Of a DNA stretch of 64,000 nt, positions 652 to 57,756 are shown piece after piece. The DNA is taken from the NCBI GenBank assembly GCA_964270895.1, contig OZ185447.1; one strand, given 5' to 3'. Numbering within the stretch: the stretch's first letter is position 1; the number at the start of each line of letters is the position of its first letter. The position numbers and the translations under genes were made by a program. This stretch comes from Podarcis filfolensis. Lineage: Eukaryota. The notes below the pieces were generated by a model that worked only from the letters and a program-made list of their open reading frames with translations, was not told where the DNA came from and searched no databases.

Positions 652-13027
<12,376 letters not shown>

Positions 13028-13679
13028 GGTTCCCCCCTTGAGGTACAGAGAATGTGTCGTGTTGTGTCCTGTGGATACTGCAGACACGCAAGGAGGTGGG
13101 GGGGGGGACACTCTTCACCCTTCCCCAGCCAGTTGCATTGCAGCTGCTGTCAACTGAGCCCTTGTTCTTCCACAGATGCCACTTGGAAAAGCAAGAATGA
13201 AACTCCTCTCTTCTTTTCCGTAAAAAAAGGGGTTTTGTATTTCGTGGCCAAAACAAAAAATCCTTGGCCTTTACACCTTACAGTTGTCAGCAACCTTTCC
13301 TTGATTTACATTTAGAGAGCCCACTCAACACAAGTGGATCCTTTTTGCTCTGGGAAAGTCAAAACAACTCTCCTTTCATTCAAGTTTAATTCCCTCTCAA
13401 GTGACAGGGATGGCAGCTTCTGGTTTTTTTCTGCTTGTTTTTAGTCTTTGTCTTAAAGGCAAGACCATTAAATTAAAAAGAATTAAATACTTTCAACATA
13501 GAACTCTAAGAAGCGGAAGGTGATCCAATAACTTTTTCTTCCTTTACATAAAATCAGGCCCTGCCAGCGCACAGAGATCTCTCTCTAACATGGAGCCTCC
13601 TGTCTGGGTGAGGAAGGAAATCTGTCAAAACACCCTCGCCTTGGACAAGGGTTTTAGATCCCTCCAACTGCGACACAGT

Positions 13680-15400
13680 GTGCCTTTAAATATATATGTA
13701 TGTATATATATATATTTGTTTGTTTGTAAAACCCAATTTTAAAACAAACCCCAGCGCATGGCAACTTTCTTGCAGGTTGAAGGAAGCCTTTGCTTTAAGT
13801 GCCTATCTGTGTGGTTTTTTCCCCCCGACGATGAACCGCGAAGCTGTCACTTTCGACTTTCCCTCAGGGGAATTGGGGGTTCGCCCCCGACGGAGCTGCC
13901 AGCCTGGGCAGCCTCCCCTTTAAGACTGCGGAGGTGGCTCCTGCCAACAATGGCAAGCGGCTTCCGCCCAGAGGGCAATTCACTTCCTCCGCTCGGCCGA
14001 GGGCTCCCCGCGAGGGAAGCGGCTCCGCGGGGCCATCTCTTCTTCCTCTTCTGCTTTCCCGGGAAGCGACACCTTCCTCCTCCTCCTCCTCCTCGCGAAC
14101 CTCCGTCCGTGCAGAAGAGGCCTCCCGGATTCCTCCCACAGGGTGTGACCTTGCCTTTAAGGGTCCGGATCTCTGTGTCTCAATTTCCCCTTTAAGAGTG
14201 TTCGATTTTGAGTCCGCCACACATTTCCTGCCAAAGCATGGCCTCCCCTTTAAGAATGTGGATTTAAAGTTCTCCCTTGTCAGACACCGACTCTCCCAAC
14301 GACCGGAATTAAAAGCCCTCCAAGCATTTCTCTTTCCTCCTTGTCAGCTTGCGCTGCCCTTTAAGGATCCAGCGTTCAAGGTCCTCCGGAGAAACCCGAA
14401 TTTCACCTTTAAGGGCCACCCCTCCCTCTCGGCCACAATGAGGGCCCGAGAAGAACTCCCCTTTAAGAGGGCCGAGCTCCCTTTAAATCCATTGACAGGC
14501 GCTGGCGGTTGGAGGGGGGGTTGTTGTCCTCCGGCGTTAAGTGCCCCCTCTTCTCGCGGCCCCCCAAGCTGTCCCTTTAAGAGCGCCGGCCGTTGAGGGG
14601 GCTTTTCAACTCACCCCACCTTTTCGCCTCCGTCCAGGCTCGCGGCAAGCGGCCCCGCGAGCCCCTGGCGCTGATTGGCTGCGAGGCTGGTACCCTCCGC
14701 TATCGTCGCGGCCCCCCCACAGCTGATTGGCCGAAGCGGTGAGGTGAGTAAGGATGGGGGAGGGGTGGCTGGCTGGCTGGCAGGGTCCGGCTGCAGGGAG
14801 GGAGGCCGGCAGACGGGCTGGCGTGGCGCTCCCGTGCCCCTCGCGCCTGGGTGGGGGGCCCTTTCGGCTCGCCGTCCTTTGCCCCCTCCCCGCTCCGTCT
14901 CCGCTGCTGCCCCCCGACTCTCCCTCTCCCTCTAGCAGCCTCTGCCGGATCCCCTTCGTCTCTGCGCACGGCACGCAACTCCTCCCACAGCGTCATATCC
15001 CTCCGCCCTCTGCGTTGATGGAACCATTTAAAAAATCCCTCCGCTGGAAAAAGAAAAGGAAATAGTCCCTCCGGTTAGCCTCTGTTTCCGCCCACCCGCC
15101 CCTTGGAGACTGTTCGAGGTGGAGGGTGTTCCCTTAAACCAACACCCCCGCCTTCAGAGTCACTTCCGTCCTCCGCAGGGTGACGTCATGGTTTCACGGA
15201 GACAAACGTGATGCGATGATGTCATACTTTATTCGCAGCAACCTCGCACGGTGATGCTATAACGCCAGCGCGTGATGTCATAGGGCTCGGCGCCACACGC
15301 CTCTGCTGTAGCAGCCCGTTGAGGACGAAGGAGAACTTGATGACGTCACAACACTGCCATGCGATGCCATCCTCCCGCAATGGAACTGTTACTTTCCAAG
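13680..15400. promoter_or_regulatory. FBRS CpG-rich promoter / 5' region
   Basis: GC- and CpG-rich. Two reverse CCAAT boxes (ATTGG at 14674 and 14726), an ETS-like CACTTCCG at 15161, CRE sites at 15181 and 15341, and a minus-strand donor GGG|gtgagt near 14613. Confidence 0.8.
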
Positions 15401-32770: not shown

Positions 32771-34589
32771 GGCTAAACCTGACCCAGGGATCTGCCCTAG
32801 AATAGCATTTTTAGCCAGGTCTAAAGTCTGGATCTTGAAATGTCTGCCTATGTGTTAGAAAAAACAAAACAAAATTTTTTCTTCCAGTAGCACCTTAAAG
32901 ACCAACTAAGTTAGTTCTTGGTATGAGCTTTCGTGTGCATGCACACTTCTTCAGATACACTGGAAAAAGAAAGTGTTAGAAAGTGGGAGATGGACTCATG
33001 TTTATTTGTGTGCGTGCAAGGGATAGATGAAACTGCAGCAGTAGGTTTCCTGAGTAACACTGCAAGCATAACCCCATTTACCCGAAAGTAAGCACCACTG
33101 CATTCCATAGGCCTGAATTCTTGGGTAGGCATGGTTAGGAGACTACGTACTGCAAACCCCACGAAAACCCTTAACACTGTTTTTCTCTTCATATGGATGC
33201 AGCCTACATATTTCTTAACCCAGGAGCTTCTTGGTTCTTGTGGTAGATATCACACTGTCTTCCTGTGCATTTTTTCTTCCCAAGATGTTTTTCAGAGGGA
33301 TTCCTCATCTTGCAGCGCTTAACCCAGGGATGGGGAAACCTGTGTCCCGCCAAATGTTATTGGACTCCGATCAGCCCAGCCAACATGGCCAATGGTCAAG
33401 AATAGTGGATGTTGTGGTCCAGTAGCATCTGGCGGGCCAAAAGCTTCTCCATTCCTGCCTTATTCTGCCTCACACTACCTAAGAGTCAGAGAAGAGTCTG
33501 TGCACAAGCAGAACCATGGTGGAGAGTGGGTGCAAAATTCTGCCCGGGTTGACACCTGCCCCCCCCATCCGGCCACTGAATGTGTGTGGATTAGGTTCTG
33601 TTTCAAAACCAAGTGCTTAATTTGGTGATCAAGCCTCTTTTCTGTCTGCAGCAGATGGAGCAAATTCTGCCTGGATTCTGTCTCTCCCTGCAGAGAGCAA
33701 GAACAAAGTGGAAAACCCACAGGAAGGTGGTGCACAGCCACGTCCCATTTCCTCAAGTAGCTCCAGCGGGAGTGGAAATAAGGCGCTACAGAAAGGAGGC
33801 TCTGCGAAAGACCAGCCGACTTTTTGTAAAGGGGACTTGAAGGACCCTATGTGGGCCTTGTGTGGCAAAACAAAATCCTACAAATGCCCCGACTGCGGGA
33901 AAAATTACCGCAGGAGCACAGACCTCTTGAGGCACCAGAGGACCCACACGGGAGAAAGGCCTTATCTGTGCCTGGACTGTGGGAAGAGCTTCAGTCGGAG
34001 TTCAATCCTCCTGGAGCACCAGAGAATCCATACAGGTGAGAAGCCATACAAATGCAGCCACTGTGGGCAAGGATTTAGCCAGAGCTCCAACTGTAAGCAG
34101 CATGAGAGGACTCATGGGAAGGAGAAAAGGAGCGACCCAATACACTGGGGATCAACTTGGCAAAGGACAGAGGTTCAGAGGCGTGGGCCTAAAAGCCTGA
34201 AAAGAATTGATGAAGGTGCAAGAGCTGAGCTTGGACTTGGATCTCAGTCTCCAGGGGGAAGTTCCTCATGGAGCTCAAAGATGGTGATGAAGTATCAGAA
34301 AAGCCATAGGATGGAGAAGCCCTACAGGTGCCCTGAGTGCGGGAAATGCTTTGCACGCAGCACGGATTTCATCCGGCACCACATTACCCACACAGGAGAA
34401 AAGCCCTACACGTGTGTGAAATGTGGCAAGAGTTTTACGCGCAGCTCGGTCCTCATTGAGCACCAGCGAATCCACACGGGAGAGAGGCCCTACAAGTGTC
34501 GGCTGTGCGGAAAGGGCTTCAGTCAGAACTCTAACCGCAACCAGCACGAGACAATCCATCAGGCTAAGAAATCTCCTGACACTTCCTGA
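32597..34589 (+). CDS. C2H2 zinc-finger protein, 6 fingers in two clusters of 3, no KRAB/SCAN seen. Exons 32597-32723 and 33652-34589, about 354 aa.
   Basis: ORF 33708-34589 has six CxxC-12-HxxxH fingers with TGE(K/R)P linkers. The upstream exon (ATG 32597, donor CAG|gtgagc) is phase 1 and joins in frame at the tctgcag|CAG acceptor. The first exon is less certain than the finger exon. Confidence 0.85.
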
Positions 34590-41300: not shown

Positions 41301-44300
41301 CATTTTCAGTATTCTTCTATAAGTTGCTTTCCTTTGGCAAAAGTCAGCACTGGTGGTGATTTCGATACTTTAAAAATGGCTGTTTGAGTTGGCTGCAGAG
41401 AACCCATCCTGTGAGGAGAAATTGACAAAGTGGTGTCTTCCCTGGCAACCATTTCTTACCTCCTTAGCCTTAGGCATGCACAACATTTGACTTGTTAGCC
41501 GTCTGTGATGACCCTTGGTGACCTCCTGGGACAGTAAAACACAGTAGGGCTGTCCAGGATCATATAGGTCACACTATACTGTTGATGAGATGTACTTGGT
41601 TTAGTGCAGGGGTCACCAGTGCAGCAGCTGCCAGTGTACCCACAGTACCTCCTATGGTGCCCACAAAAGGTCTCAGTAAATATCCCCTCAAAATCCACAG
41701 TGTATGAGACTGTTTGATCTTCCTGCTCAGTACCTCTTTGCATTTGTTCATCCTCTTCTGCACAACCCCATAACAGCCATTTTGTGATGGGCACCAATGG
41801 TACTTCTGCAGGATTCCAAATGTGCTCACTGCCTCCAAAAGGCTGGTAACCTCTGGTTCACGTGGGCTTAAGGCCATCTAGGCCTGTCTCAGCATTTGAG
41901 AACTATTTGACTCTAGAGGGATAAGATACGTGTAAAAATGCTCACTTTTTGCTGTTTTTGCCTTTTCTAGCCAGAGTGTTCATTCTCCCAGAATAGGTTA
42001 ATAATGGAAGATGGCAGTGAGAAAGAACTGATAATTAGAAGAAGAGTGAAGAAGGAAAAAGATGAGGAAGAGAATCTGGAATTTGAAGTGGAGGTGAGGA
42101 GGGTTTCCGCAGGTGGGAAACCAGTGAGTGGAGATGAAGATGGGAAGGTGAGATGTTTTATTTGGGTGAGGGGAAAGAAGGACCAACTTTCAGGGAAAAA
42201 AAGGATTGCTTAACTCAGCCTTTGAAAAACTGGCTCCTCAAATGTTTTAGACTACAGCTCCCATCATCCCTAGCCAGCACAGCTGGTTTGGAATTGTAGT
42301 CCAAAACATGTGGAGGGCACTACGTTTGCAACGGCTAGTGAAATCATTGTCTTGGCCAAACTTGCTCCATCTTGGTTCTACTGCCTTGCAGGACTTGCCA
42401 TCTGAGGAAGAGATGAAGGCTGAGGTGGAGGAGCAGAAGGCTCAAGAATTCGAGCTGCAAAAAGTCACCATCCCGATAGATGGGATTTTGGTGAGTACTG
42501 GGGGTAGCATAGCCGAGGGAATGTCAGGAGAGCTTGGAGGAGAGACTTGTGGTAGATGGAGGTGGGGGGTGAGGTGGTTCTATTGTACTGTTTCCATGAT
42601 CTTTGGGAATGTTGGGTTTCTCCTGTCAGAGACCTGATCTGCACTATACATTTAAAGCAGTATTGTACCACTTTAAACGGTCATGTTTTCCCTCAAAGAA
42701 TCCTGGGAACTGGAATTTGCTATGTGTGCTGAGAGTTCCTAGGAGACCCCTGTTCCCTCACAAAGCTATAAATCTCAGAGCCATTCCCTCTTCCCAAGGA
42801 AATATAGGAATTGTAGCTGTATGATGGGAATATGGGTCTCCTAACAACTCTGGACACCCTTAACAATTTTCAGGATTCTTTGGCAGAAGCCATGCCTGTT
42901 TAAAGTGGTACGATACTGCTTTAAATATATGGCACTGATGGGGCCAGACTGCCAAGGCTGCATCCTGATGTTAGCCTTTTTTTGGTGAGTCTTGGCAGCT
43001 GTATGGCAGGGGGGACAATGATGAAAGAAGTGGTATTTGGCAATTCTTCTGGCATCGTACAGGACAACATCTTACTAATGTTAGGACCTTGTAAGTCACT
43101 GAAACTCAAGAGTGCAATGAAGGAATAGTAAAGAAAAAAATGTCTACATGCTGAATCCAAGATTCACAAAAAAGGCTTGGCGTCAAGATGAAGCCTTAAC
43201 AATATGGCCAGAGAACCAGCAAGGGAAAATTTGGCCACATGCCTCTTTTCTTATCACGCTGCTGTAGCATTGGGGCCACCACTAGTAGGGACCCTCTTTG
43301 TTGTTGTTGTTTAGTCGTGTCTGACTCTTCATGACCCCATGGACCAGAGCACGCCAGGCGCTCCTGTCTTCCACTGCCTCCCGCAGTTTGGTCACACTCA
43401 TGCTGGTAGCTTCGAGAACACTGTCCAACCATCTCATCCTCTGTCGTCCCCTTCTCCTTGTGCCCTCCATCTTTCCCAAGGGACCCTCTTTAGCCTTGTC
43501 TAATCTCCTGCCATCCCCACTTCACTTGCACACAATATACACTCCCTTTACAAGTAGGTCAGGTTATATCATCGGCAGCCTGTTAAGCCAAAAGAGAGGC
43601 TTGCCAAGCATATATTAACTTTGACCTCTGGTTTTGACCAACTCTTAATACACTTTAGTTCCTGCTCTTATCAAAAGATGATTTCTAAAACTATGATACA
43701 GTACAAAGATGGACTCCTTCTTTAAAAAAAGAATGACTTGTTTATGTGGCAGTTTCCAGGCTAGCACGCCTCATATCTGTTCCCAGAGTGCCTTTTTTTA
43801 CAGCAGGCTAAGCTGTCCTAATCATTTCCTCCATTCCTGTAGGTGCCCTCCTCCTCCTCACACCCCAATACCTGTAGCGTTTGTGGCAAGAGTTTTAGCC
43901 GTCGCTCAAACTTGGCCAAGCATCAGATCATCCACACGGGTGAGAAGCCTTACCGCTGCAATGACTGTGGCCGCAGCTTCAACCAGAGCTCAGCCCTCAC
44001 CAAGCACCAGCGGACACACACTGGGGAGCGCCCTTACGTCTGCGGAGACTGTGGCAAGGCCTTCACGGCCAGCTCAAACCTCCTCCAGCACCGCCGTTTT
44101 CACACAGGAGAGCGGCCCTATCGGTGTGAGCTGTGTGGCAAGGCCTTCTCCCAGAGCTCCAACTACAACCTGCACCGCCGCAGCCACACAGGAGTCACGC
44201 CTTATCAGTGCAATGTGTGTGGCAAACGCTTTACCGGGAGCTCCTGCCTTACTCGCCACCAGAGGACCCACACAGGGGAGAAGCCATACCAGTGCCAGGA

Positions 44301-44862
44301 ATGTGGCAAACGCTTTTCTGGCAGCTCCACTCTGGCCAACCACCGGCGCACCCACACAGGTGAGAAGCCTTACGGCTGTGCTGAGTGTGGCAAGAGGTTC
44401 ACCCACCACTCCAACCTAGTGGACCACTGGCGGGTGCACACAGGAGAGAAACCATATGTTTGCACCGAGTGCGGGAAGAGCTTTCGGCTTAGCTCCCACA
44501 TCATTCGCCACCGCCGCACTCATGCCAATGCCCGCGGTGCTAGCCTGGCATATGACATCCTTGGCAGCGTCGATACAGCTGGCAATGACGCCAGCATTAG
44601 TGCCCATCACGTCAGCCTCCTCTATGAAAACGCCAGCAGCACTGACGGTGGCAGCCCTCATGGGTCCGGTCACAATGCCCTGTGTGCCAATAGCAACATC
44701 TCCAATGGCAACAATGATACCGATGGGGAAGAGGGCAGCCGGCTTCTCATCTGCAGCCAGTGTGGTAAAGGTTTCCGCCTGGAGTCCGGCCTTCAAGAAG
44801 ACTCCGTGCTGGGTGAGGGACCCTATACTTGTACTGAGTGTGGCACCAGCTGTTGGACGTAG
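38387..44862 (+). CDS. ZNF771: ZNF771 orthologue, 8 C2H2 fingers plus a degenerate C-terminal finger. Coding exons: 38387-38479, 38734-38856 (weaker donor), 39699-39830, 41971-42093, 42392-42490, 43843-44862.
   Basis: The finger helices [56 protein letters not shown] follow my recalled human ZNF771 order (RRSTLAK, QKSALTK, AASNLRQ, QSSNYAQ, GSSCLAR, QSSALAK, HRSNLAE, LSSHFIR). The penultimate exon [14 protein letters not shown]|VP resembles human YEVVKLKIPMDNKE|VP. All upstream exons are phase 0 with GT-AG sites. Confidence 0.82.
39170..39660. mobile_element. Two divergently oriented CORE/MIR-like SINE fragments. Similar fragments at about 4240-4440, 9570-9890, 36290-36480, 38090-38260 and 55180-55260.
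   Basis: Core gtgaccttgg..cagtca..ctctc..ctcacagggttattgtgaggataa on plus (39430-39660) and the reverse core cattttatcctcacaacaacc at 39190. Confidence 0.6.
39880..40105. mobile_element. Tc1/mariner-type (Tigger/pogo-like) MITE, copy 1
   Basis: Ends caatggtacctc / aaggtaccactg followed by TA; internal ttcttaacctgaa repeats; same family as 59493-59750 in the opposite orientation. Confidence 0.8.
42641..42935. mobile_element. MITE with about 29-bp TIRs; a degenerate relative lies at about 40335-40485
   Basis: atttaaagcagtattgtaccactttaaac (42650-42678) and gtttaaagtggtacgatactgctttaaat (42898-42926) are inverted repeats with one mismatch. Confidence 0.8.
43300..43478 (-). mobile_element. Bov-B (RTE LINE) 3' fragment with a 13-bp target-site duplication
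   Basis: Minus strand encodes [29 protein letters not shown] and ends in (CAA)n; flanked by agggaccctcttt at 43287-43299 and 43479-43491. Confidence 0.92.
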
Positions 44863-51188: not shown

Positions 51189-51660
51189 TTAGTCCATAAA
51201 TACAACTCAAGCATATTGTGCTGAGAATGAGACCCTGTGGAAGAGCCATATTTATTCAGAAGTGGGCCAGTTCAGGAGTCTTGTCTTACTGGCCTGCAGC
51301 AACTTTCATAATAGCTGTCATGGAGAGGCTTATCTAGCTCATCATACACTTTCTAGGTTGGAAACCACAATGAGGTGAGAAAATAAATTCACTGTGGTTG
51401 AGAAAGGCTCTTTACATATGCACTGGCCTAAGCTGCAGTAGTGCCCACATTCAGGACCCAAGGCCAATGCAGAAAGAACAGAGAGGAAGGAAGAAGATGA
51501 GGACTTGGTAAAAAATATATCTAAAGACTAACTGGCAGCAAATGATGCAGAATAGATGGAACTAAGGTGGTTAAAAGACTTGTGGAAGCAGAATGTGAGG
51601 ATTGATGGTCGTTGGGGATTGATGGTAGATGAATCAATGTGAATTTCTTCTTTCTACTAG

Positions 51661-53315
51661 GAAACAGAAAGATGGATACAGCTGAAAAACCTGCAAGCAA
51701 AAGGGAAGATGTAGTATCAGGAATAAAATCTCAGAGAAGTTTAGCAACCCCAGTAGCAAAGCATCGGCGAGTAGGCAGGGTAATCTGCGGTGTTTGTGGA
51801 AAGAGCTTTGTCAAGACCTGTGAACTGTTTGCCCACCAGCAGACCCACACAGGGGAGAAGCCATACGAGTGCTCAGATTGTGGCCGTTGCTTCTCTGTCC
51901 AGTCCGCATTGGCCAGTCACCAGAGTATCCACACAGGAGAGAAGCCTTACAGATGTCAGGAGTGTGGCAAGAACTTCCGGCTGAAGAGCAACTTGGCCCG
52001 CCACCAACGAGTTCATGATGGCATAAGACCATTCCGATGTGAATACTGCGGGACCACCTACAGCACCAAAGCTCACCTGGTCTGGCACCTGAACACCCAT
52101 ACAGGTGAGAAGCCATACAAATGTACTGAGTGCTGGAAGCGTTTTGGAGAGATCTCCTTGCTTGTAGAGCATCTTCTTTCACACCAGGTTGATGGTAGTG
52201 GTGGAAAAAATGGAACTGCCTCTGCAGGACGTTTAGGTAGTGGGAACCTTCACCGCTGCGACGATTGCGGCAAGAACTTCTGCCGGAACACCACGTTAGC
52301 TGAACACCGTCGCATTCACACTGGTGAGCGTCCTTTTGCCTGTGAGGAGTGTGGCGAGCGGTTCATGCGACGGGCTCTCTACAACGAACATGTCCGCACT
52401 CACTCTGAAGAGGGCCCACCCAACCTGTGTGCAGCCTGTGGTAAATCTTTCACCAAGCGCTATTCCCTTCTCCAGCATCAGAGGTCACACACAGGAGAAA
52501 AGCCCTACCAGTGCCCCGATTGTCCAAAAAGCTTCATTGCCAGCTCTGCCTTGACACAGCACCGGCGGATACACACTGGAGAGACACCCTACCCATGCCC
52601 AGATTGTGGGCGCAGTTTTAGCCAGAAATCAGTGCTCACAACTCATCGGAGACTTCACACAGGCGAGAGGCCATACAGATGCCAGGAGTGTGGGAAAGGC
52701 TTTAGTCAGAGTTCAGCGCTGACTCAGCATCTCCGGACTCACACTGGTGAGTCCCCGTACAGCTGCCAAGAGTGTGGGAAAAGTTTTAGTGGTATGTCAG
52801 CTCTCAAGCGACACCACCTCACCCATACAGGGGAACGCCCCTTTCGCTGTGATGAATGTGGCAAAGGGTTCAAGCAGAGCTCCACGCTGGTCCAGCACCA
52901 GAGGATTCACACTCACGAGAAGCCTTATGCCTGTCTACAGTGCAACAAAAACTACAGCCAACGGGCTGCTCTTGCCAAGCACCTGAGGACTCACACCAAG
53001 GAAGCCTTGCTTTCTGGCACATGCAGTGAGCCAATGGACATCAGGGTTTACAAAGAGCCTTTTGTCCAACCCCAAGAAGAGGAGAATACAGAGAATGACA
53101 TGGAGGAAGAAGCTGATGAGGTAGTGGTGCTCCCTCCAGGGACATGGGATGCTGAGGTAAAAGAAGAGTCAGAGCTTCAGTGGGAGAATGACATACCATT
53201 TGCAGAAACGGGGTCACTCTCATGGGTGAAAAAGGAAGAGTCAGATGAGGCCCAGGTAGAAAGGAGAGAACTATCAACAGTTTCTCTGCACATCAAAGAG
53301 GAACCAGATGACTGA
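51661..53315 (+). CDS. C2H2 zinc-finger protein, 14 fingers, acidic C-terminal tail, no KRAB/SCAN seen. First ATG in the exon is at 51672 (547 aa); upstream exons are unresolved.
   Basis: Long ORF with 14 CxxC-12-HxxxH units and TGE(K/R)P linkers. Acceptor ttcttctttctactag|G at 51660/51661. Stop TGA at 53313-53315. Confidence 0.92.
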
Positions 53316-56579: not shown

Positions 56580-57045
56580 AGAGTAGGATGACATTTACCG
56601 CCCTGCGGGAGCCTTTAACACTTCCCAATTTTTTGACTGGTGAATCTTGATACAACCTTCCTTTCCCCTGGCAAATCGAGAACGCTATCTTGCGTCAGAC
56701 TTCTTCCGGCAGAAGAGCTTGACCGAGCATAGAGCGCCCGATATACGCCTCTTGCTTCACGTTGACTGGCTATTCCTCTTAAAGAACGTGAGACGCACCA
56801 ATGAGAATCTCCCATTTGTTCTCCCTAGCGAACCTACTCTCATCTTCCGCCTCTTCCTTGAGGATTCTCCGCCCATTAGAGGCGCCGACCGGTCACCTGG
56901 TGGTCAGATGCAGGAAATGGGCAACTTGAATCCCTCTTGCGCGTTGTCTCTGGTGTCTTTTTTTGTCTCCTCCGAAGCTTCTCCTTCAGCGTCTGCATCT
57001 TGATTTATACTTGTCGCATCCTAGATCTTCTTGCTATATTGCATA
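56580..57045 (+). promoter_or_regulatory. BORCS6 CpG promoter
   Basis: CpG-rich stretch directly upstream of the ORF, with ETS CTTCCGG (about 56704), CCAAT (about 56798) and GC-box-like CCGCCC. Confidence 0.7.
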
Positions 57046-57756
57046 ATGGAGGGACAGCATATAATGGCTCAGGTGCATATACAGACCCCAACGTTCTCCT
57101 CCTCCTCGTCGTCGTCTGTGGCTGGGGAAGAATCCAGGAGGCTGAGGGTGGCAGCCCGCGAAAGGATGGCTGGAGGCCGTTTGTTGGACAGTCATAGCCT
57201 GGATGGGATAAGCCAAGTGTATGGAGCATCCAAGGCTCAGGAAGGTAGGAGGGCTACCATATCCAGCGCTTTGGAGCTAGAAGGGACAGTGAGCCATGAC
57301 GGGGACCTGACACACTTTGTGGCCAACAACCTGCAGATGAAGATCAAGATGAGCTCCCGGGGCAGTCTGGATGACACAGAACCCACCTCCTCATCATCAG
57401 TGTCGTCGCAGTTGTCTGTTAGGGGCAAAACTGCAGATATACCTCCCATTGACCCACAGGTGATTAGGGATCTGGAAAGGCTCACTAGGGATGTGGCACA
57501 GAAGGTGGACCAGATGCTAAGAGCCTTGAACAGCGCTATCCAGAACATGACAGCCCTCAGCGTTGGGTACATCCAGACTTACCGGGATGCTGTAGACAGC
57601 TTGGGTGAATCTGTGGACATGAGCATCAAAGGGATGTACACTCTGATGGCAAGGTGCGAGGAGTTGGACCGCTCCATGCAACCTGTCCATACCCTCGCTA
57701 AACAAATCCGGGAGATTAAGAGGACTCTGGAAATCTTTGAGGCACTTTGCAAGTAG
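57046..57756 (+). CDS. BORCS6: BLOC-1-related complex subunit 6 (lyspersin, C17orf59), single coding exon, 236 aa
   Basis: The C-terminal half (DLTHFVANNLQMKIK, PPIDP, MTALSVGYIQTYRDAVDSLGESVDMSIKGMYTLMARCEELDRSMQPV, TLEIFEALCK) closely matches recalled BORCS6. AATAAA at about 57876. The start codon choice (57046) is inferred. Confidence 0.92.
   Translation: MEGQHIMAQVHIQTPTFSSSSSSSVAGEESRRLRVAARERMAGGRLLDSHSLDGISQVYGASKAQEGRRATISSALELEGTVSHDGDLTHFVANNLQMKIKMSSRGSLDDTEPTSSSSVSSQLSVRGKTADIPPIDPQVIRDLERLTRDVAQKVDQMLRALNSAIQNMTALSVGYIQTYRDAVDSLGESVDMSIKGMYTLMARCEELDRSMQPVHTLAKQIREIKRTLEIFEALCK

Follow-up and report, generated by a model that had tools for sequence, protein, structure and literature searches.

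Clusters of a single motif beside genes for chromatin regulators offer the closest described parallels to the element reported here. At the 5′ end of CHD4, in its promoter and enhancer, one long motif (12–15 bp, CATCCCATAATA) is densely clustered, conserved between species and read by ZNF410, which shows that a factor can depend on clustered sites and act on essentially a single gene. ZFP64 at MLL/KMT2A, ZFP568 and ZNF558 are reported in citing papers to be further single-target zinc-finger proteins. Here we compare these systems with an array of CCTTTAAR motifs found at the 5′ end of the gene FBRS in a window of 64,000 nucleotides (the whole stretch of DNA that was analysed) from the lacertid lizard Podarcis filfolensis (assembly GCA_964270895.1, contig OZ185447.1). 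The non-canonical Polycomb complexes PRC1.3 and PRC1.5 have three AUTS2-family subunits, of which FBRS is one, and the literature searched contained nothing on the control of FBRS expression itself. We read the array as a promoter-proximal, amniote-conserved homotypic cluster of predicted DNA binding sites for one sequence-specific factor, and give this reading a probability of about 0.5.

The closest precedents for the FBRS array are the conserved clusters of ZNF410 motifs at CHD4 and that of ZFP64 at MLL, and the array appears to fit the same kind of device, i.e. a homotypic site cluster at a chromatin-regulator gene. At CHD4, however, the factor, its occupancy, its effect and the genome-wide uniqueness of the cluster have been demonstrated, whereas the FBRS array has a different motif, a reader that is a predicted zinc-finger protein and a much stronger orientation bias. 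The 7-mer CTTTAAR, contained in every site of the array, is an orphan conserved promoter motif with no factor assigned ('#29 Novel' in the list of Xie et al.; CTTTAAR_UNKNOWN in MSigDB), just as the initial annotation had said. The array shares the promoter-proximal, conserved position of this set and belongs to it, but the word at FBRS (CTTAAAGGGGnGGCC) has more bases and greater specificity. CTTTAAR alone may largely reflect TATA-like sequences, and placing the array in this set names it without explaining how it works.

On its minus strand the window carries an AUTS2-family gene, of which the 5′ two thirds are included. Comparison of the exon-1 peptide with 'probable fibrosin-1' gave 129/131 matching residues for Podarcis, 129/130 for Lacerta and 127/131 for Zootoca, an exon carrying the Auts2 domain lies near 938–1168, and the gene order PRR14–FBRS–SRCAP is seen in the orthologous loci that were fetched, including that of a frog. 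On this sequence evidence the gene is FBRS, the name already given to it. Exons were searched one at a time. Two CCAAT boxes in the sense orientation closely precede the array, 93 nt or more from its first site; that the array follows CCAAT boxes had been claimed. The features that frame it are the following:

12635 to 13027, minus strand: first coding exon of FBRS, with its ATG at 13027 in an ACCATGG context and a GTGAGG donor after 12635.
14674 to 14678, minus strand: proximal CCAAT box GCCAATCAGC (gene sense), of NF-Y type, conserved in lacertid, anole and turtle.
14726 to 14730, minus strand: distal CCAAT box GGCCAATCAGC (gene sense), conserved in lacertid, cobra and anole; the turtle has GGCCAGTCA there.

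A pattern search and a script placed CCTTTAAR on the plus strand at 13683, 13917, 14154, 14189, 14247, 14358, 14406, 14460, 14480 and 14574, giving 10 copies over 13683–14581, 8 of them CCTTTAAG, against a local expectation of 0.05–0.35. Nine of these starts had been reported correctly, the tenth (14480) having been placed at 14481. FBRS being on the minus strand, the motif reads YTTAAAGG in the gene sense (the word is also written CTTAAAGG(GG)). Eight sites are packed into 428 bp (14154–14581), close to the 430 bp first given, and the expectation of one site per 33 kb per strand that accompanied this figure is arithmetically correct. Across the whole window CCTTTAAR occurs 18 times against 7.7 ± 2.9 expected, a count reached in none of 100 shuffles, while the remainder of the 64 kb contains only two other copies of CCTTTAAG, both on the minus strand. 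For 13600–14700, order-1 and order-2 Markov simulations yielded 0.10 and 0.35 copies respectively (maxima 2–3), against the 10 observed, so that the array, confirmed by pattern search, shuffles and simulations alike, is real. The site at 13683 lies beside an (AT)n tract, is conserved nowhere else and is probably a chance match; the real array is thus the nine sites of 13917–14581. The FBRS CpG island contains this core in its downstream half. Numbered in the direction of FBRS transcription, its sites are:

13917 to 14581, minus strand: core array of nine co-oriented YTTAAAGG words (gene sense), recognized by enrichment and by conservation in five other amniotes.
14574 to 14581, minus strand: site 1, CTTAAAGG; identical in lacertid, cobra, anole and turtle, with a conserved GGCGCT flank.
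14480 to 14487, minus strand: site 2, TTTAAAGG, preceded by an invariant CCTGTCAATGG; kept in lacertid, cobra and turtle, TTTAAAGA in anole.
14460 to 14467, minus strand: site 3, CTTAAAGGGG; kept in lacertid, cobra and anole, GGTAAAGG in turtle.
14406 to 14413, minus strand: site 4, CTTAAAGGTG; lacertid only, GTTAAAGG in cobra, the least conserved site of the core array.
14358 to 14365, minus strand: site 5, CTTAAAGGGC, preceded by a CCGGAGGAC..TTGAAC block; kept in lacertid and turtle.
14247 to 14254, minus strand: site 6, CTTAAAGGGGAGGCC, with the full extended consensus; kept in lacertid, cobra and anole, CTTAAAAG in turtle.
14189 to 14196, minus strand: site 7, CTTAAAGGGG; kept in lacertid and cobra, a shifted TTTAAAGGGG in anole.
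14154 to 14161, minus strand: site 8, CTTAAAGG, followed by CAAGGTCA; TTTAAAGG in cobra, CTTAAAGG in turtle.
13917 to 13924, minus strand: site 9, CTTAAAGGGGAGGCT, downstream of an invariant GCCATTGTTGGC; kept in lacertid, anole and turtle, CTTAAAAG in cobra.
13683 to 13690, minus strand: outlying TTTAAAGG by the (AT)n tract, probable chance match; unaligned and unconserved in every other species.

Orthologous loci were reached from the exon-1 open reading frame (ORF), which led to a Naja naja protein and its contig, and from the exon-1 peptide, which led to a full-length turtle FBRS and then to named FBRS orthologues in many vertebrates. Loci with upstream flanks were obtained from Naja naja, Anolis carolinensis, Dermochelys coriacea, Eptesicus fuscus, Puma concolor and the frog Spea bombifrons. 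Counts of YTTAAAGG in the gene sense, within 2 kb upstream of the FBRS ATG, were as follows (positions relative to the ATG):

Lacertid: 10 sites, −1554 to −663.
Naja: 6 sites, −1518 to −1096.
Anolis: 6 sites, −1479 to −892.
Dermochelys: 8 sites, −1264 to −177.
Eptesicus: 7 sites, −747 to −272.
Puma: 10 sites, −743 to −126.

Local composition predicts 0.07–0.27 sites per species against these 6–10, and the rest of each locus has a background of 0.02–0.06 sites per kb per strand. Many copies of one motif per few hundred bp, far above chance, as in a homotypic cluster, were therefore found in the lizard and in all five other species. Pooled over the six amniotes, 47 sites are in the sense and 7 in the antisense orientation (binomial p = 2e-8), the mammals having some full sites in antisense. 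No second cluster was seen across the ~230 kb of vertebrate DNA compared. In the one frog examined, Spea bombifrons, the 1.7 kb from PRR14 to the FBRS ATG contained zero sites, and two teleost-like AUTS2-family exon-1 loci, which may be FBRS or a paralogue, also had none. Because the array is present in all amniotes examined and absent from a frog with identical gene order, it would have arisen either on the amniote stem or at an earlier point, frogs (one examined) then having lost it. Judged from these orthologous sequences, lizards, snakes, turtles and mammals have retained the element over some 300 million years. In mammals, the 5′ edge of the array carries a pair of motifs that point towards each other (GGCCCCTTTAAA-TCTC-CTTAAAGGGG).

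PRR14 (identified by its Tantalus domain) lies upstream of FBRS and in the same orientation in the Anolis, Dermochelys, Eptesicus, Puma and Spea loci. A directional pause, termination or insulator element, shielding the FBRS promoter from read-through out of this co-oriented neighbour, would account for sites that are themselves co-oriented with transcription, and PRR14 holds this position in every fetched amniote locus; the G-rich half of the motif also resembles MAZ-type pause sites. The array, however, lies downstream of the CCAAT promoter and not upstream of it, the 3′ half of the motif (GGGGnGGCC) departs from the MAZ consensus GGGAGGRR, and the frog has the same PRR14–FBRS–SRCAP arrangement with zero sites, all of which makes such an element improbable.

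Over the entire 1.8-kb 5′ region, lacertid and cobra align with 76% identity. Within the array, these two species agree at 67/72 positions of the nine core motifs and at 374/580 spacer positions (Fisher 9e-8). Among four sauropsids, 81.5% of motif columns and 51.8% of non-motif columns are identical to the lizard, a motif identity attained by 0.02% of random sets of nine 8-mers (permutation p = 2e-4) and by 0 of 20000 draws of CpG-free or AT-rich control 8-mers (p < 5e-5). Site 1 is identical in all four sauropsids and sites 2, 3, 6 and 9 in three of the four. One site is recognizably orthologous in all amniotes through its upstream CCGGAGGAC..TTGA block; at site 5, the CCGGAGGACTTGA block and a site are present in bat and puma too. 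Most mammalian sites cannot be aligned with reptile sites, while number, orientation and place are preserved, the pattern that would be expected from selection on binding-site content. The initial annotation had asked whether the motifs outlast their spacers: they are much better conserved, and the array recurs in orthologues out to mammals. Two non-motif words inside the array region are also invariant in the four sauropsids, GCCATTGTTGGC (13943–13954), which contains a SOX-type CATTGTT, and CCTGTCAATGG (14489–14499). A further word of nuclear-receptor half-site type, GGCAAGGTCA, abuts site 8 and is conserved in squamates.

The array had been described as something other than a tandem repeat. 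This holds for the present sequence, in that Tandem Repeats Finder detected no tandem array at the motif region, the lizard spacings range from 20 to 237 bp and flank information outside the core of the lizard sites is ~0 bits, so that neither the constant period nor the whole-unit similarity of a minisatellite is seen in the lizard. It probably does not hold for the origin. Mammalian spacings cluster loosely at 38–52 bp and the units are weakly similar outside the core; tandem duplication of a ~40-bp unit was probably the starting point of the array, the core alone having been preserved. The repeated, co-oriented units and this hint of an old tandem origin, together with a repeat search that grouped several sites into 16–22-nt families, are what a functionless, neutral remnant of a lineage-specific minisatellite would leave. 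Such a remnant is nevertheless very improbable, given an array that occupies one orthologous place in squamates, turtle and two mammals and an invariant core between spacers diverged to ~50% identity.

Similar comparisons bear on a protein-coding repeat. A 220-codon ORF (13934–14596, plus strand) does exist, in which the sites would be read as (P/A/T)FK and six of the eight sites spanned share one frame. Its product has no Pfam match, the site phases are mixed, the gaps between lacertid and cobra are not multiples of three and the other five species have stops in all frames. Contradicted by these broken frames and by the Pfam result, the coding explanation retains next to no credence and we rejected it.

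The unit proved longer than the 8 bp of the initial annotation, whose CCTTTAAR core itself stands. Pooled sites show G at +8/+9, G at +12 and C at +13/+14, with information to about position 15, clear in mammals and weaker in sauropsids, and none past +15 or in the interval 25–35 nt downstream of the sites. In the gene sense, the sauropsid consensus is CTTAAAGGGgaNg and the mammalian consensus, which is sharper, is CTTAAAGGGGnGGCC.

This profile also bears on repeated weak core-promoter elements, i.e. CTTAAAGGGG(T/A)GG acting as a TATA-like box with a G-rich downstream flank and supporting dispersed sense-strand initiation. The fixed sense orientation of the sites suits such elements, as does the position of site 1, ~93 nt downstream of the proximal CCAAT box in a classical CCAAT–TATA arrangement; the box would also resemble the adenovirus major late TATAAAAGGGGGTGG. 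A core promoter of this type would have TATAWAWR and an initiator 25–35 nt downstream. By eye, however, CTTAAAGG fits TATAWAWR at 5–6 of 8 positions, no initiator-like information was found at that distance, and CpG-island promoters of this type normally lack TATA boxes, which leaves core-promoter elements with little probability.

An array that is enriched and co-oriented, whose extended motif has been conserved over its spacers since the amniote ancestor, is what we take for a cluster of DNA binding sites. Each copy, a 10–15-bp word (consensus CTTAAAGGGGnGGCC), would be bound by the same sequence-specific factor. A word of this length would suit a protein with four or five C2H2 zinc fingers, most likely a polydactyl one. 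Multivalent occupancy of this ~0.7-kb platform, which closely follows the NF-Y/CCAAT promoter, would determine how strongly FBRS, a PRC1.3/1.5 subunit gene, is transcribed. We infer DNA, and not RNA, as the form in which the array is read, as we do the zinc-finger reader, the way in which FBRS output would change and the placement within intron 1. The conserved word of 10–15 nt, longer than typical motifs of RNA-binding proteins, favours DNA.

Several observations weigh against a DNA binding-site cluster. The orientation bias (47 versus 7) is strong, and a DNA cluster needs none whereas an element acting at the transcript level does. The location downstream of the CCAAT boxes and the positive sense-strand GC skew of the region imply that the array is probably transcribed. 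The literature searched on the 8-mer, on the extended word and on the FBRS promoter included no relevant paper, no array at FBRS and no factor for the word. Finally, aligners tend to anchor on shared words, so that the motif identities may be somewhat too high; at most sites, however, the conserved flanks speak for true orthology.

The strongest rival to the DNA cluster is a role at the RNA level, in which CUUAAAGGGG(A/U)GG words would be recognized in nascent FBRS RNA, either within the 5′ leader or early in intron 1. Its readers might be G-run binders of the hnRNP H/F type, the words serving as intronic splicing enhancers, or else a factor for export, retention or premature termination. Three features of the lizard sequence are relevant here:

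14606 to 14614, minus strand: candidate exon-1 splice donor GGG/GTGAGT, with a donor score of 9.1 at the aligned place in lacertid and anole.
13115 to 13138, minus strand: upstream ORF (uORF) of 7 codons, MQLAGEG-stop, ~110 nt before the main ATG, from a four-sauropsid alignment.
14880 to 15010, minus strand: possible exon 1 of an upstream start, or upstream promoter or regulatory block, ~130 bp conserved in four sauropsids.

The candidate donor at ~14614 and the conserved uORF before the ATG suggest that exon 1 is short and non-coding, that intron 1 would start with the array and that exon 2 would carry uORF and ATG. Cobra and turtle have GTGAGG donors ~50 nt further down than the candidate donor of lacertid and anole. 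The in-frame ATG...TGA of the uORF is kept with synonymous-type changes (MLLAGEG in cobra, MQLAGEG in anole, MQQAGEG in turtle), and in sauropsids the uORF probably serves to control translation of FBRS. An AT-rich, CpG-poor stretch separates the CpG island of the array from the ATG exon in squamates. The block at 14880–15010, upstream of the CCAAT boxes, contains invariant CCGTGCGCAGA and GATCCGGC.

In favour of an RNA-level role, the gene-sense orientation is found in all six amniotes, the array is downstream of both the CCAAT boxes and the candidate donor common to lacertid and anole, its sense strand is G-rich, and the uORF places at least the last ~110 nt before the ATG in the mRNA. Bat and puma, moreover, share 94% identity over 1.3 kb of non-coding DNA before the ATG (4700–6030 in each locus), as constrained leaders do. 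We judge this identity to be far above the neutral expectation for these orders, and it implies that the whole mammalian 5′ region is under strong constraint. Set against this are the length of the unit and its GC-rich 3′ part, unusual for an RNA-binding-protein motif, and the antisense full sites of mammals. Predicted folding was no better than that of shuffled sequences on either strand (z = 0.45 and −0.03) and the window had no Rfam match, so that neither sign of a structured non-coding RNA was obtained. An RNA-level role is thus rather unlikely, although it deserves serious weight.

Known factors were compared with the word of the proposed binding-site cluster. The CHR element (cell cycle genes homology region), bound by LIN54, has the consensus TTYRAA; CTTAAA/TTTAAG does not fit this hexamer and the TTTAAA variants alone do (2 of the 10 lizard sites), so this candidate was rejected. 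TCF/LEF, the SRF CArG box, nuclear-receptor half-sites, MAZ, GLI, PRDM4 and ZNF652 are each presumably mismatched at invariant positions, in an informal comparison. The JASPAR profile of ZNF684 may contain CCACCCCTTTA, which we treat as a lead and not as evidence. Such a profile would overlap the mammalian motif (GGCCACCCCTTTAAG, antisense) over ~11 bases and fit the reptile form GGGGAGG less well. One study of ZNF684 reports 266 peaks from chromatin immunoprecipitation sequencing across repeat elements and a G-rich preference, with FBRS not mentioned, and a search for literature linking ZNF684 with FBRS returned no relevant paper. The window itself encodes C2H2 zinc-finger genes at 33708–34589, 43843–44862 and 51639–53315 (plus strand). 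These were rejected as readers by a naive recognition code, itself a weak test, which predicts AAA-CTG-GCG-type or A/T-rich targets unlike CTTAAAGGGGAGGCC.

A stricter version of the binding-site reading, by analogy with ZNF410, would have a dedicated factor of amniote-stem origin bind the genome mainly or solely at this array and so set the dosage of FBRS and hence of PRC1.3/1.5. We regard this as doubtful. If true, it would be a second circuit of the ZNF410–CHD4 type, one factor for one chromatin-regulator gene, recognized from the DNA letters alone, and would point to a possible dedicated dosage control of a Polycomb subunit such as ZNF410 revealed for CHD4/NuRD. In any case, an array that has apparently been stable in place, number and orientation since before the mammal–reptile split suggests a specific cis-regulatory device built on an orphan motif, and once its reader is named, part of the CTTTAAR_UNKNOWN class would have a factor.

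Some further features were noted around the locus. At 15160–15350, an ETS-type CGGAAGTG (gene-sense strand) lies with cAMP response element (CRE) sites, two perfect and two near (TGACGTCA / TGATGTCA); this cluster is partly conserved in cobra and may represent a second, upstream FBRS promoter. On the plus strand at 14736–14750, a strong donor-like GGTGAGGTGAGTAAGG (GGTAAGG in the cobra version) is directed away from FBRS and may mark a divergent upstream antisense transcript. Contigs from one sequencing run and one metagenome assembly carry a vertebrate AUTS2-family exon 1 adjoining a SpoU-type methyltransferase gene, and are evidently animal, teleost-like DNA and not microbial. Elsewhere in the window there is a run of N at 470–636, and an intronless ORF at 57031–57756 (plus strand) encodes a BORCS6 C-terminal domain (E = 2.5e-37).

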